Shown: one piece after another, positions 39,701 to 42,141 of the stretch | Position numbering within the stretch: position 1 is the first letter of the stretch | Layout: every line of letters begins with the position of its first letter | Assembly (NCBI GenBank): GCA_033442325.1 | Contig: JAWQFM010000010.1 | Coordinates: 449,437-513,436, forward strand | Direction: 5' to 3' | DNA from: Salpingoeca rosetta | Taxonomy: Eukaryota > Protista > Choanoflagellata | DNA length: 64,000 nt | Notes under the pieces: generated by a model | What the model saw: the letters and a program-made list of their open reading frames with translations, nothing else | What the model was told of the DNA's origin: nothing | Database searches by the model: none | Program-made: the position numbers and the translations under genes

Positions 39701-42141
39701 NNNNNNNNNNNNNNNNNNNNNNNNNNNNNNNNNNNNNNNNNNNNNNNNNNNNNNNNNNNNNNNNNNNNNNNNNNNNNNNNNNNNNNNNNNNNNNNNNNNN
39801 NNNNNNNNNNNNNNNNNNNNNNNNNNNNNNNNNNNNNNNNNNNNNNNNNNNNNNNNNNNNNNNNNNNNNNNNNNNNNNNNNNNNNNNNNNNNNNNNNNNN
39901 NNNNNNNNNNNNNNNNNNNNNNNNNNNNNNNNNNNNNNNNNNNNNNNNNNNNNNNNNNNNNNNNNNNNNNNNNNNNNNNNNNNNNNNNNNNNNNNNNNNN
40001 NNNNNNNNNNNNNNNNNNNNNNNNNNNNNNNNNNNNNNNNNNNNNNNNNNNNNNNNNNNNNNNNNNNNNNNNNNNNNNNNNNNNNNNNNNNNNNNNNNNN
40101 NNNNNNNNNNNNNNNNNNNNNNNNNNNNNNNNNNNNNNNNNNNNNNNNNNNNNNNNNNNNNNNNNNNNNNNNNNNNNNNNNNNNNNNNNNNNNNNNNNNN
40201 NNNNNNNNNNNNNNNNNNNNNNNNNNNNNNNNNNNNNNNNNNNNNNNNNNNNNNNNNNNTTCTCTTCCCGGACTCTGCATCATATATAGTGGGTGTGATG
40301 ATGTGTAGGACCGATATGTCCATCGGGTTTCGTCGGTCTGACATGTATGAGCAGGGGTATCCATAGAGGTAGGCATGCGAGGTAATCAGGTGATATGCGG
40401 CTGTGCGTGTGTGGGGCTGCGGGTGTATAGTGAAGGTGGTGCATGAGAGGCGATGCTGGTGATGGTGAAGCTCGTGCGTGTGAGGTGATGGTGGTGATGG
40501 TGGTGGTGGTGCGTGTGAGGTGATGGTGGTGATGGTGATGGTGGTGCGTGTGAGGTGATGGTGGTGATGGTGATGGTGGTGCGTGTGAGGTGATGGTGGT
40601 GATGGTGATGGTGGTGCGTGTGAGGTGATGGTGGTGATGGTGATGGTGGTGCGTGTGAGTTGTCAGTTGGTGTGGCCGCTGCACCAAGTTTGATTGTAAC
40701 TTTGGTCTCCCGGCCCAGTCGCAAGGCAAGTGCAAGGCACCGCACCAGGCGAGCAGTGGTGGCCATTGCGACGACGTACAAGCACCATACGCACCTCGGC
40801 GAATGCAAGCAGCGACCCATCACCCACCAACACCAAGGACGGAATGCGAATACAGGGATATCTAAGTGATGGCGCCGTGCAGAGTGAGTTCCACGAATGA
40901 GCACAGCCAAGGCGGCGTACACAACACGCAGCGCATACAACACGTGGGCATTCTAGCAAGCGATCGCAACAACTCAACCCCCACAAACACACAAACACGT
41001 GCGCTCACCCTGCTTCTCCGGGTGTGAAGACATCCACCAAAGTCACGTTGGCTTCGCAATCTGCAATCACCGCTCGAATCTGCTCATCGCGAGTGCAGTA
41101 TCCAGTCCCCTTCACGTACGACTGGTTTCCTACCAGGCAGATAATGGCATACATGTGGATTAGTTGAGTGATTGTGTGCGATTGCGTGTGCGATTGCGCG
41201 TGCGAGTGATCGTGTGTGTGTGTGTGTGTGTGTGTGTGTGTGTGTGTGTGTGTGTGTGTGTGTGTGTGTGTGTGTGTGTGTGTGTGTGTGTGTGTGTGTG
41301 TGTGTGTGCGTGTGCGTGTGCTTTTGTGTGCATGTGTGTGTGTGTGTGTGCGTGTGTGCGTGTGCTTTTGTGTGCATGTGCGACTTTTGTGTGTGCGATT
41401 GTGTGTGCACCTGCGATTGCACATTTTGCAACTCACACACGCATACGAGTACACAGAGGCATACATGCGTACACACACGCTCACACATACACAACTGCGC
41501 TGCCTTCTTGATGGCAGGCACATGGTTCAAACGCCAATGAAAACCTGACGTGAATCGAGGGCATCCGACGAATAGCATCGCCACTGCTTTGGTCCATGCT
41601 GTGCATTTGTGTCGAAGCGCGCATACAGTGGCAGCGGATGGTTGTGTTCCTCCAACGCGTGTAGGCACTGTCACAACATACCACACAACAACAGCGTTCA
41701 GTGAGTGGGTGGTTGCACGAGATTGCTTGTGTAGGGCATCACGGAACACACAGCACTACAAACATGAAAGTGAAAGTGCTAGTCGCACACACACCACGCA
41801 TAAGTGTGGAATGCAAGACAAAGACGCATATACATGCATACACGATCACACACACACACACAGACAACCACACACCACGCGTATGTGCAAGCACAAACAC
41901 GCGCGATGCAAACACGATAACAAGCACGCAGCACTACTGTGTTGCTACATACAGGTGCGTTCTCAACGGGGCTGTTGCAGTAAGCATCCATCAACTGTTG
42001 GCACTTCTCAGGAACGCGAACAGCGCCACTGCCAACTGCAGCTCCTTCAGCTGTGTCGGCAGCACTCAACACACCACTGACCAACACAATCACCACCAGT
42101 GACACAAGCATCACCACCACACCCTGCTGCTGCGTCATCAT
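36781..42141 (-). CDS. Secreted GH33 sialidase (neuraminidase) with N-terminal Cys-rich MAR-like module
   Basis: 12 in-frame exons: 42141-41953, 41667-41550, 41129-41009, 40861-40795, 39027-38911, 38667-38526, 38338-38269, 38056-37918, 37761-37670, 37499-37403, 37207-37144, 36965-36781. Signal peptide present. RIP motif (YPCIRIPSL...LLAFAECR). Asp boxes SRDSGHTW, SFDNGNTW, SDDGGHMY and SDDGGTTF. Conserved GPG, DE, NMR, R(VN), nucleophile Tyr in AYS, and LLFE. Confidence 0.9.
39039..39230. repeat. 35-bp tandem minisatellite, left arm (unit CGTGTGAGGTGATGGTGGTGATGGTGATGGTGGTG)
   Basis: CGTGTGAGG recurs at 39061, 39096, 39131, 39166 and 39201, inside sialidase intron 4. Confidence 0.92.
39426..40259. 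other. Assembly gap (834 N)
   Basis: Run of N inside sialidase intron 4. Confidence 0.99.
40476..40659. repeat. 35-bp tandem minisatellite, right arm, same unit and orientation as 39039-39230
   Basis: About five copies of the same unit. Confidence 0.92.

Follow-up and report, generated by a model that had tools for sequence, protein, structure and literature searches.

A compact MAR-like module joined to a predicted NEU1-like sialidase in the choanoflagellate Salpingoeca rosetta

We analysed a stretch of 64,000 nucleotides from the genome of the choanoflagellate Salpingoeca rosetta (assembly GCA_033442325.1, contig JAWQFM010000010.1, positions 449,437 to 513,436 of the forward strand), which is called the window below and supplies the coordinates used here. 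Its minus strand carries a gene for a protein in which a module resembling the microneme adhesive repeat (MAR) of coccidian parasites precedes a sialidase domain of glycoside hydrolase family 33 (GH33). The gene has 12 exons, and every intron is of the GT-AG type. The translation is identical to the public S. rosetta protein PTSG_04204 (P0159, 466 residues), which is listed as a 'hypothetical protein'. The exon 4/5 junction and the exon 9 acceptor were set from the public protein, its orthologues and, for the junction, a loose end in the RNA data, which at 40795 continues into TGCCGTAATTGG, the annotated start of exon 5 (CRNW...). An initial annotation, made from the letters of the window alone, had proposed that exons 1–3 encode a MAR-like module with six cysteines. 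These exons join at GT-AG sites to give exactly the peptide that it had written out, and the limits that it gave, 42003 and 41056, mark exactly the stretch from the start of the first Cys codon to the end of the sixth. The module spans residues 41–135, with its cysteines at positions 47, 55, 64, 94, 114, and 127, and contains the motifs YARFD, WRCY (residues 92–95), and YCTR (residues 113–116).

The three splice joints of the module were all observed in RNA-seq data. The joint 41953|41667 was covered by 11 reads from seven different starts in one raw run, by one read in another, and by contigs of two further runs. The joint 41549|41128 was present in contigs from two runs, each of a different study, and the joint 41009|40861 was found in two and five raw reads as well as in contigs. 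Therefore, exon 2 is part of the mature transcript, as initially predicted, and the reading frame runs on from the module into the enzyme.

The module is a homologue of the coccidian MAR domain, as shown by pairwise sequence comparison, by profiles, by the alignment of profiles with each other, and by the predicted fold. A Pfam scan with the 103-residue module, allowing E values up to 10, returned one family, PF10564 (MAR_sialic_bdg; E=3e-4, 21.2 bits), and the best sequence match in the PDB was 2lbo, the MAR1b domain of Eimeria tenella MIC3 (EtMIC3). A phmmer search of a library of 1.84 billion cluster representatives, in which E<=1e-3 was taken as significant, yielded 191 proteins. The second-best match was EtMIC3 itself (P0002, B6VCV4; E=1.7e-22), six repeats of which were matched, and microneme proteins of E. 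praecox and E. necatrix (P0043 and P0089) were also found. For the profile comparisons, we used a family alignment of 104 modules (A2) from which every sequence identified as apicomplexan was excluded; its rows are mostly metagenomic and carry no taxon. Among all PDB sequences, at E<=1, this profile matched only two groups, 2lbo (2.6e-5) and Toxoplasma MIC1 (TgMIC1; 2jh1/3f5x, 3.5e-5), and both MAR1 and MAR2 of TgMIC1 were hit. Alignment of A2 by hhalign with 16 Eimeria MAR repeats (A3) gave a probability of 97.9% and E=3.4e-13 over 82 columns.

The predicted structure agrees with these results. It was built from a multiple sequence alignment with the same exclusion of identified apicomplexans, again mostly of metagenomic rows without taxon, and it matched the MAR fold, a distorted beta-barrel flanked by helices. 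In searches with Foldseek and VIA, the top matches were MAR structures only, with a Z score of 9.3 followed by a gap to 2.8. A single-sequence AlphaFold model was poor, with a predicted local distance difference test (pLDDT) score of 58.8, and was left out of the fold search. The resemblance to MAR claimed in the initial annotation was thus borne out both by profiles and by the comparison of structures. In a six-frame search of the S. rosetta genome, with 55.4 Mb in 68 contigs, the A2 profile matched exon 2 with E=3.7e-11 and found one copy of the module, at this locus only. The equivalent search with PF10564 gave no match and is uninformative, since the exons are short and the control genomes were silent too.

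The core that the S. rosetta module shares with coccidian MARs (PF10564; MAR1/MAR2 of TgMIC1, 2jh1 and 3f5a; the type I repeats of EtMIC3, 2lbo) can be written as Q..LD..C, YAR.D, WRCY..xLD, and (H/Y)xTR..(L/I)..(L/I)..C. The predicted fold is likewise that of coccidian MARs, with two N-terminal helices, a beta-hairpin, a third strand, and a C-terminal helix. In the hhalign alignment, YCTRDEQIRAVI is paired with SHLTRPSELQAVI of EtMIC3, and YCTR falls onto SHLTR, the position of the HxT motif. The Thr of this motif forms a hydrogen bond with the carboxylate of sialic acid in coccidian MARs (PMC3192848). It is retained in S. rosetta as Thr115, and the His is replaced by Tyr113, as had been noted from the sequence. 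Over the 104 modules, the first position of the motif is Tyr in 83 and Phe in 13, the middle position is Cys in 103, and the third is Thr in 80, Ser in 23, and Ala in one, so that a hydroxyl residue is kept in 103 of the 104. The HxT motif is not universal among accepted MARs: VxT variants bind, and repeat 1 of EtMIC3 naturally has Y-L-T (PMC5646145). Therefore, the His would be dispensable and the hydroxyl residue would be what matters, and binding of sialic acid by the YCT form is plausible from these comparisons.

The S. rosetta module has six cysteines, which are conserved at 95–100% across the 104 modules, whereas coccidian MARs have eight. The disulfides of EtMIC3 are C1-C4, C5-C7, and C6-C8 (PMC3192848). 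Cys55 and Cys94 (the Cys of WRC) are invariant and correspond to C1 and C4; both residues are preserved along with the carboxylate-bonding Thr. In contrast, the finger of about 15 residues in Eimeria (GCVDxCGxxTSC, with C5-C7 and C6) is an insertion that has no counterpart in S. rosetta; its absence, also recognized initially, removes C5, C6, and C7 from the alignment. Cys114 and Cys127 are new or shifted in the alignment and presumably pair with each other, beside the predicted disulfides Cys55-Cys94 and Cys47-Cys64; the former, in the middle of Y-C-T, is new relative to coccidian MARs. The contexts differ as well, a single copy on an enzyme of a free-living bacterivore in S. rosetta and tandem repeats in a microneme adhesin of coccidian parasites.

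The GH33 domain directly follows the module, in agreement with the layout initially proposed. PTSG_04204 scored 50.7 bits against Pfam BNR_2 (cut-off, 31.4), and its closest solved relatives were Sialidase-1/NEU1 (8du5, E=2e-28) and the sialidase of Micromonospora viridifaciens (1eur, 2.4e-26). The RIP motif is present as IRIP at residue 147, and four strict Asp boxes are located at residues 193, 241, 302, and 352, with a degenerate fifth (SSDGIHW). The arginine triad (Arg148, Arg337, and Arg396), Tyr423, and Glu321 (in MDEAQ) align with their counterparts in 1eur and 8du5, and Glu442 too is aligned with a catalytic or structural residue. Catalytic roles were assigned from established knowledge of GH33 (PMC3431349). 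The core catalytic residues of GH33 are conserved. The RIP motif, Asp boxes, Arg triad, and Tyr/Glu pair are common to PTSG_04204 and NEU1-type sialidases (8du5), but animal NEU1 has no MAR module. The Monosiga brevicollis orthologue, MONBRDRAFT_28502, is closely similar and has the same layout of MAR and GH33. Sialidases of M. brevicollis were classed as NEU1-like by Giacopuzzi et al. 2012 (PMC3431349), and the passages of that paper drawn on here make no mention of an N-terminal lectin module in choanoflagellate sialidases. At least four other BNR_2 loci were found in the S. rosetta genome, none of which matched the MAR-like profile.

The fusions of the module were surveyed in the best 150 of the 191 module matches, 44 of which carry GH33. 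Mapping of the module-GH33 fusion, which the initial annotation had suggested, revealed it across choanoflagellates, in diplonemids, and on many marine metagenome contigs. The choanoflagellates with MAR-GH33 are S. rosetta, M. brevicollis, Choanoeca flexa, Salpingoeca urceolata, Savillea parva, Stephanoeca diplocostata, Didymoeca costata, and Acanthoeca spectabilis, a set that covers both choanoflagellate orders; the diplonemids are Diplonema ambulator, Namystynia karyoxenos, and Artemidia motanka. Conversely, when the 120 nearest GH33 homologues of the enzyme from C. flexa were examined, 40 had the module. Other enzymes carry it too. One cluster of eight members, for example that of Diaphanoeca grandis, combines it with a domain of the pectin-acetylesterase/Notum family (PAE). 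In another cluster of eight, both members scanned are GT29 sialyltransferases that also contain ShK and EGF domains, and the remaining six were grouped with them by sequence similarity, and one separate GT29 protein also has the module. DUF3431 was found in both scanned members of a seven-member cluster, and in four of the 150 by the overall Pfam scan; the sole scanned member of a three-member cluster has a 2OG-Fe(II) oxygenase domain. There is one fusion to an O-fucosyltransferase, in the haptophyte Diacronema lutheri, and one to a GDSL hydrolase. That the module has been fused repeatedly to enzymes which cleave or transfer sialic acids, or probably remove their acetyl groups, is our chief reason for assuming that it recognises these or other nonulosonic acids.

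Outside Apicomplexa, the named owners of the module are choanoflagellates, diplonemids, a haptophyte, and an acantharian. The acantharian, Phyllostaurus siculus, belongs to a cluster (P0107) with three tandem repeats and the canonical H-W-T motif. These repeats are of the same family as the S. rosetta module and show the WRCY core and a canonical H-x-T outside Apicomplexa, but they differ from it in their tandem arrangement, in a Cys-containing insertion of their own, and in the lack of a detected enzyme domain. In P0107 and P0280 (JGI marine metagenomes; P. siculus), the repeats follow two copies of an N-terminal repeat of about 150 residues that is unrelated to them, an arrangement that looks like a further MAR architecture outside Apicomplexa, the second in number. 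The surroundings of two metagenomic MAR-GH33 genes without introns did not decide between compact eukaryotes and bacteria as their source.

Lectin modules on GH33 sialidases are known from bacteria, where CBM40 is found in NanH of Vibrio cholerae, NanJ of Clostridium perfringens, and NanA of Streptococcus pneumoniae. There, as we suppose for S. rosetta, a lectin module on the N-terminal side targets the GH33 domain to polyvalent sialylated surfaces. The beta-sandwich of CBM40 is unrelated to the helix/beta fold of MAR; the likeness is an analogy and not a membership, and the Pfam, PDB-sequence, and Foldseek searches with the module gave no match to CBM40 or another lectin family. In a comparable manner, the MAR-like module probably serves as a carbohydrate-binding module and keeps the GH33 propeller attached to sialylated surfaces. 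The N-terminus of the S. rosetta protein is read as a signal peptide, with presumed cleavage, because in the orthologues of M. brevicollis (P0160) and C. flexa (P0003) the module comes directly after a short signal peptide of the classical type. The signal peptide would lead to secretion of a two-domain enzyme consisting of a compact six-Cys MAR fold and a NEU1-like GH33 exo-sialidase. A sialic or other nonulosonic acid in terminal position would dock with its carboxylate on Thr115 of the Y-C-T strand, and this docking would hold the enzyme on the sialylated surface while residues nearby are cleaved by the propeller, in the way known for CBM40 in bacterial sialidases. We infer the binding of a ligand, its identity, secretion, and the natural substrate from these comparisons.

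Several observations weigh against the proposal of a secreted, sialic-acid-tethered sialidase. In the catalytic domain, the acid/base Asp has no confident placement: the loop that follows the first strand, CRNWTGDGCEPTGVHAENSNRD, aligns poorly, with acidic residues nearby, and the acid/base Asp of 1eur, which we take to be the D of GIDAPG, lies opposite a His in the alignment. In the module, the His that stacks by pi interaction on the ligand in coccidian MARs is replaced by Tyr, the Cys finger has been lost, and the middle of the motif is occupied by a Cys. The first and last repeats of EtMIC3 bind more weakly (Lai et al., PMC3192848), and its only natural YLT repeat, MAR1a, is among these weaker binders; among coccidian MARs with an altered motif, several fail to bind sialoglycans (PMC5646145). 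Furthermore, neither GT29 nor NeuB was matched in the S. rosetta genome by an exon-by-exon six-frame search, which is insensitive to split exons and, for GT29, gave no match in any control genome either. The last point bears on the physiological ligand and weakly favours exogenous ligands, such as those of prey bacteria. The module could thus be a true MAR homologue that never bound sialic acid, or no longer binds it, and that has a role in structure, folding, or oligomerisation or in binding another ligand, e.g. another acidic sugar or a protein. However, the near-invariant Thr or Ser and the binding by VxT variants (PMC5646145) speak for a retained function, and a ligand-neutral scaffold would hardly explain why the module recurs on enzymes by which sialic acids are made, cleaved, or probably de-acetylated. 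We consider a lack of binding unlikely, though far from negligible.

The location of the enzyme can also be questioned. The hydrophobic core of about 19 residues at the S. rosetta N-terminus is long for a signal peptide and could be a signal anchor instead, the closest solved catalytic relative is Sialidase-1/NEU1, and choanoflagellate sialidases were classed as NEU1-like (PMC3431349). These points would fit an enzyme that works inside the cell, in the lysosome or food vacuole, and turns over endocytosed or endogenous glycans, with the module as a sorting element or the stalk of a type II anchor. We regard this as improbable: the signal peptides of the orthologues are short and classical, and the module recurs in the manner of lectin modules, both in tandem arrays and on enzymes of unrelated classes. 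Moreover, an intracellular enzyme would be compatible with a lectin function in the food vacuole, and this alternative concerns location more than mechanism. It is harder still to believe that the MAR likeness of this small, Cys-rich domain with its WRCY-like motif arose by convergence or chance. The single-domain PF10564 score, like the 17.1 bits of the full protein, is below the gathering cut-off of 25.1, and the C-terminal third of the module aligns weakly in pairwise comparison. This cut-off is an annotation threshold for a model trained on coccidian sequences and is not a structural criterion; the score below it accounts for the absence of MAR from the public annotation of P0159 and its orthologues, which lists sialidase/BNR domains only. 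The EtMIC3 match, the exclusive profile matches in the PDB, the hhalign probability, and the exclusive structural matches together make coincidence very improbable, and the preferred reading remains that of a MAR homologue serving as a sialidase lectin module.

Some further features of the gene and its surroundings were observed (Table 1). The acceptor of exon 9 is a tandem site of the NAGNAG type (gag|aag|GCG, 37761-37766). The distal site is used by the annotated protein and the orthologues (DE|AQLVEL), and use of the proximal site would add one Lys. Intron 4 contains a 35-bp minisatellite, with the unit TGGTGGTGATGGTGATGGTGGTGCGTGTGAGGTGA, at 39038-39249 and 40403-40659, in six to seven copies per side; it flanks an assembly gap of 834 N at 39426-40259, and the real array is probably longer than assembled. 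A repeat tract is located at 41837-41876 in intron 1. In intron 2 (41174-41407), the gene strand has a GT-rich start and then a (CA)n tract of about 150 bp towards the 3' end. RNA-seq depth in intron 2 (41344-41484) was about 2x, compared with 5-13x on exons, and a few reads of run X19 there had the opposite orientation; the intron 2 reads could come from an unspliced precursor or a weak antisense transcript. On the plus strand, a long open frame at 34412-36133 is convergent with the 3' end of the sialidase gene. Its C-terminal half looks Kelch-type by eye, with recurring 'GG...Y..GG' blades. On the other side, upstream of the sialidase gene, a multi-exon gene (42600-44680, plus strand) is transcribed divergently, with its start about 470 bp from the sialidase ATG. 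Several hydrophobic segments are encoded in it, and at its end it runs into a long homopolymer tract in poly-Thr/poly-Cys frame.

Table 1. Positions of the sialidase gene features in the window, and of other BNR_2 loci in the S. rosetta genome
Feature	Position	Strand	Remarks
Whole coding region, MAR-GH33 sialidase PTSG_04204	36781..42141 (stop included)	-	GT-AG introns; translation identical to P0159
Predicted signal peptide, hydrophobic core GVVVMLVSLVVIVLVSGVL, and short Ala/Gly linker (residues 1-40)	42022..42141	-	Kyte-Doolittle maximum 3.35 over residues 7-21
MAR-like module, first to sixth Cys (residues 47-127), exons 1-3	41056..42003	-	Pfam, phmmer, PDB profile, hhalign, and structure matches
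Exon 1	42141-41953	-	MMTQQQ..., hydrophobic signal sequence, then EKCQQLMDAYCNSPVENAP
Exon 2	41667-41550	-	CLHALEEHNHPLPLYARFDTNAQHGPKQWRCYSSDALDS, core beta-hairpin of module; in spliced RNA
Exon 3	41129-41009	-	(R)NQSYVKGTGYCTRDEQIRAVIADCEANVTLVDVFTPGEAG; YCT(R) strand, C-terminal helix of module, linker into GH33
Exon 4	40861-40795	-	GYPCIRIPSLVLVGDGSLLAFAE, GYPCIRIPSL...AFAE; start of GH33 propeller, RIP motif, Arg148; aligned to 8du5/1eur
Intron 4	39028..40794	-	35-bp minisatellite on either side of assembly gap
Exons 5-12, remaining GH33 catalytic domain	36781..39027	-	Asp boxes, aligned catalytic residues
Exon 5	39027-38911	-	CRNW... start
Exon 6	38667-38526	-	
Exon 7	38338-38269	-	
Exon 8	38056-37918	-	
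Exon 9	37761-37670	-	
Exon 10	37499-37403	-	
Exon 11	37207-37144	-	
Exon 12	36965-36781	-	includes stop
Other BNR_2 loci	C7:789337-790236, C6:722567-723004, C6:899669-899821, C18:1310609-1310917		

In the literature found, MAR is presented solely as an invasion lectin of coccidia, and the domain has been stated to be restricted to coccidial parasites (Marugan-Hernandez et al., PMC5646145). We found no published report of a MAR outside Apicomplexa, in a literature coverage that is incomplete and with the InterPro taxonomic listings unchecked. The compact, enzyme-linked MAR subfamily in free-living protists appears to be new, and the interpretation given in the initial annotation is largely supported as a whole. 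Derivation of the parasite adhesin from a lectin module of sialidases, which it had also suggested, is plausible because the distribution of the module is wide, a direction that is argued from the breadth of taxa. More broadly, MAR may be an old and widespread eukaryotic module for sialic or other nonulosonic acids, which would usually target sialidases, GT29 sialyltransferases, and O-acetylesterase-like hydrolases in free-living marine protists. The coccidian adhesins would then be a derived offshoot that gained the Cys finger, multiplied the repeat in tandem, and lost the enzyme, and the choanoflagellate MAR-sialidase would recognise nonulosonic acids on bacterial prey or on glycans of the environment and strip them off. 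We put this wider scenario forward tentatively and give it somewhat less than an even chance.

In choanoflagellates, the nearest living relatives of animals, a compact MAR on a sialidase places the domain in a much wider and probably older context, and it suggests a previously unlisted family of carbohydrate-binding modules for sialic acid. The compact six-Cys form may be of use as a small probe for sialoglycans. S. rosetta can be cultured and genetically manipulated; therefore, the function of the module is directly testable in this organism. The locus offers a plausible origin for the parasite adhesin, and the partners of the module, namely sialidase, sialyltransferase, and acetylesterases, point to an unexplored biology of nonulosonic acids in marine heterotrophic protists.

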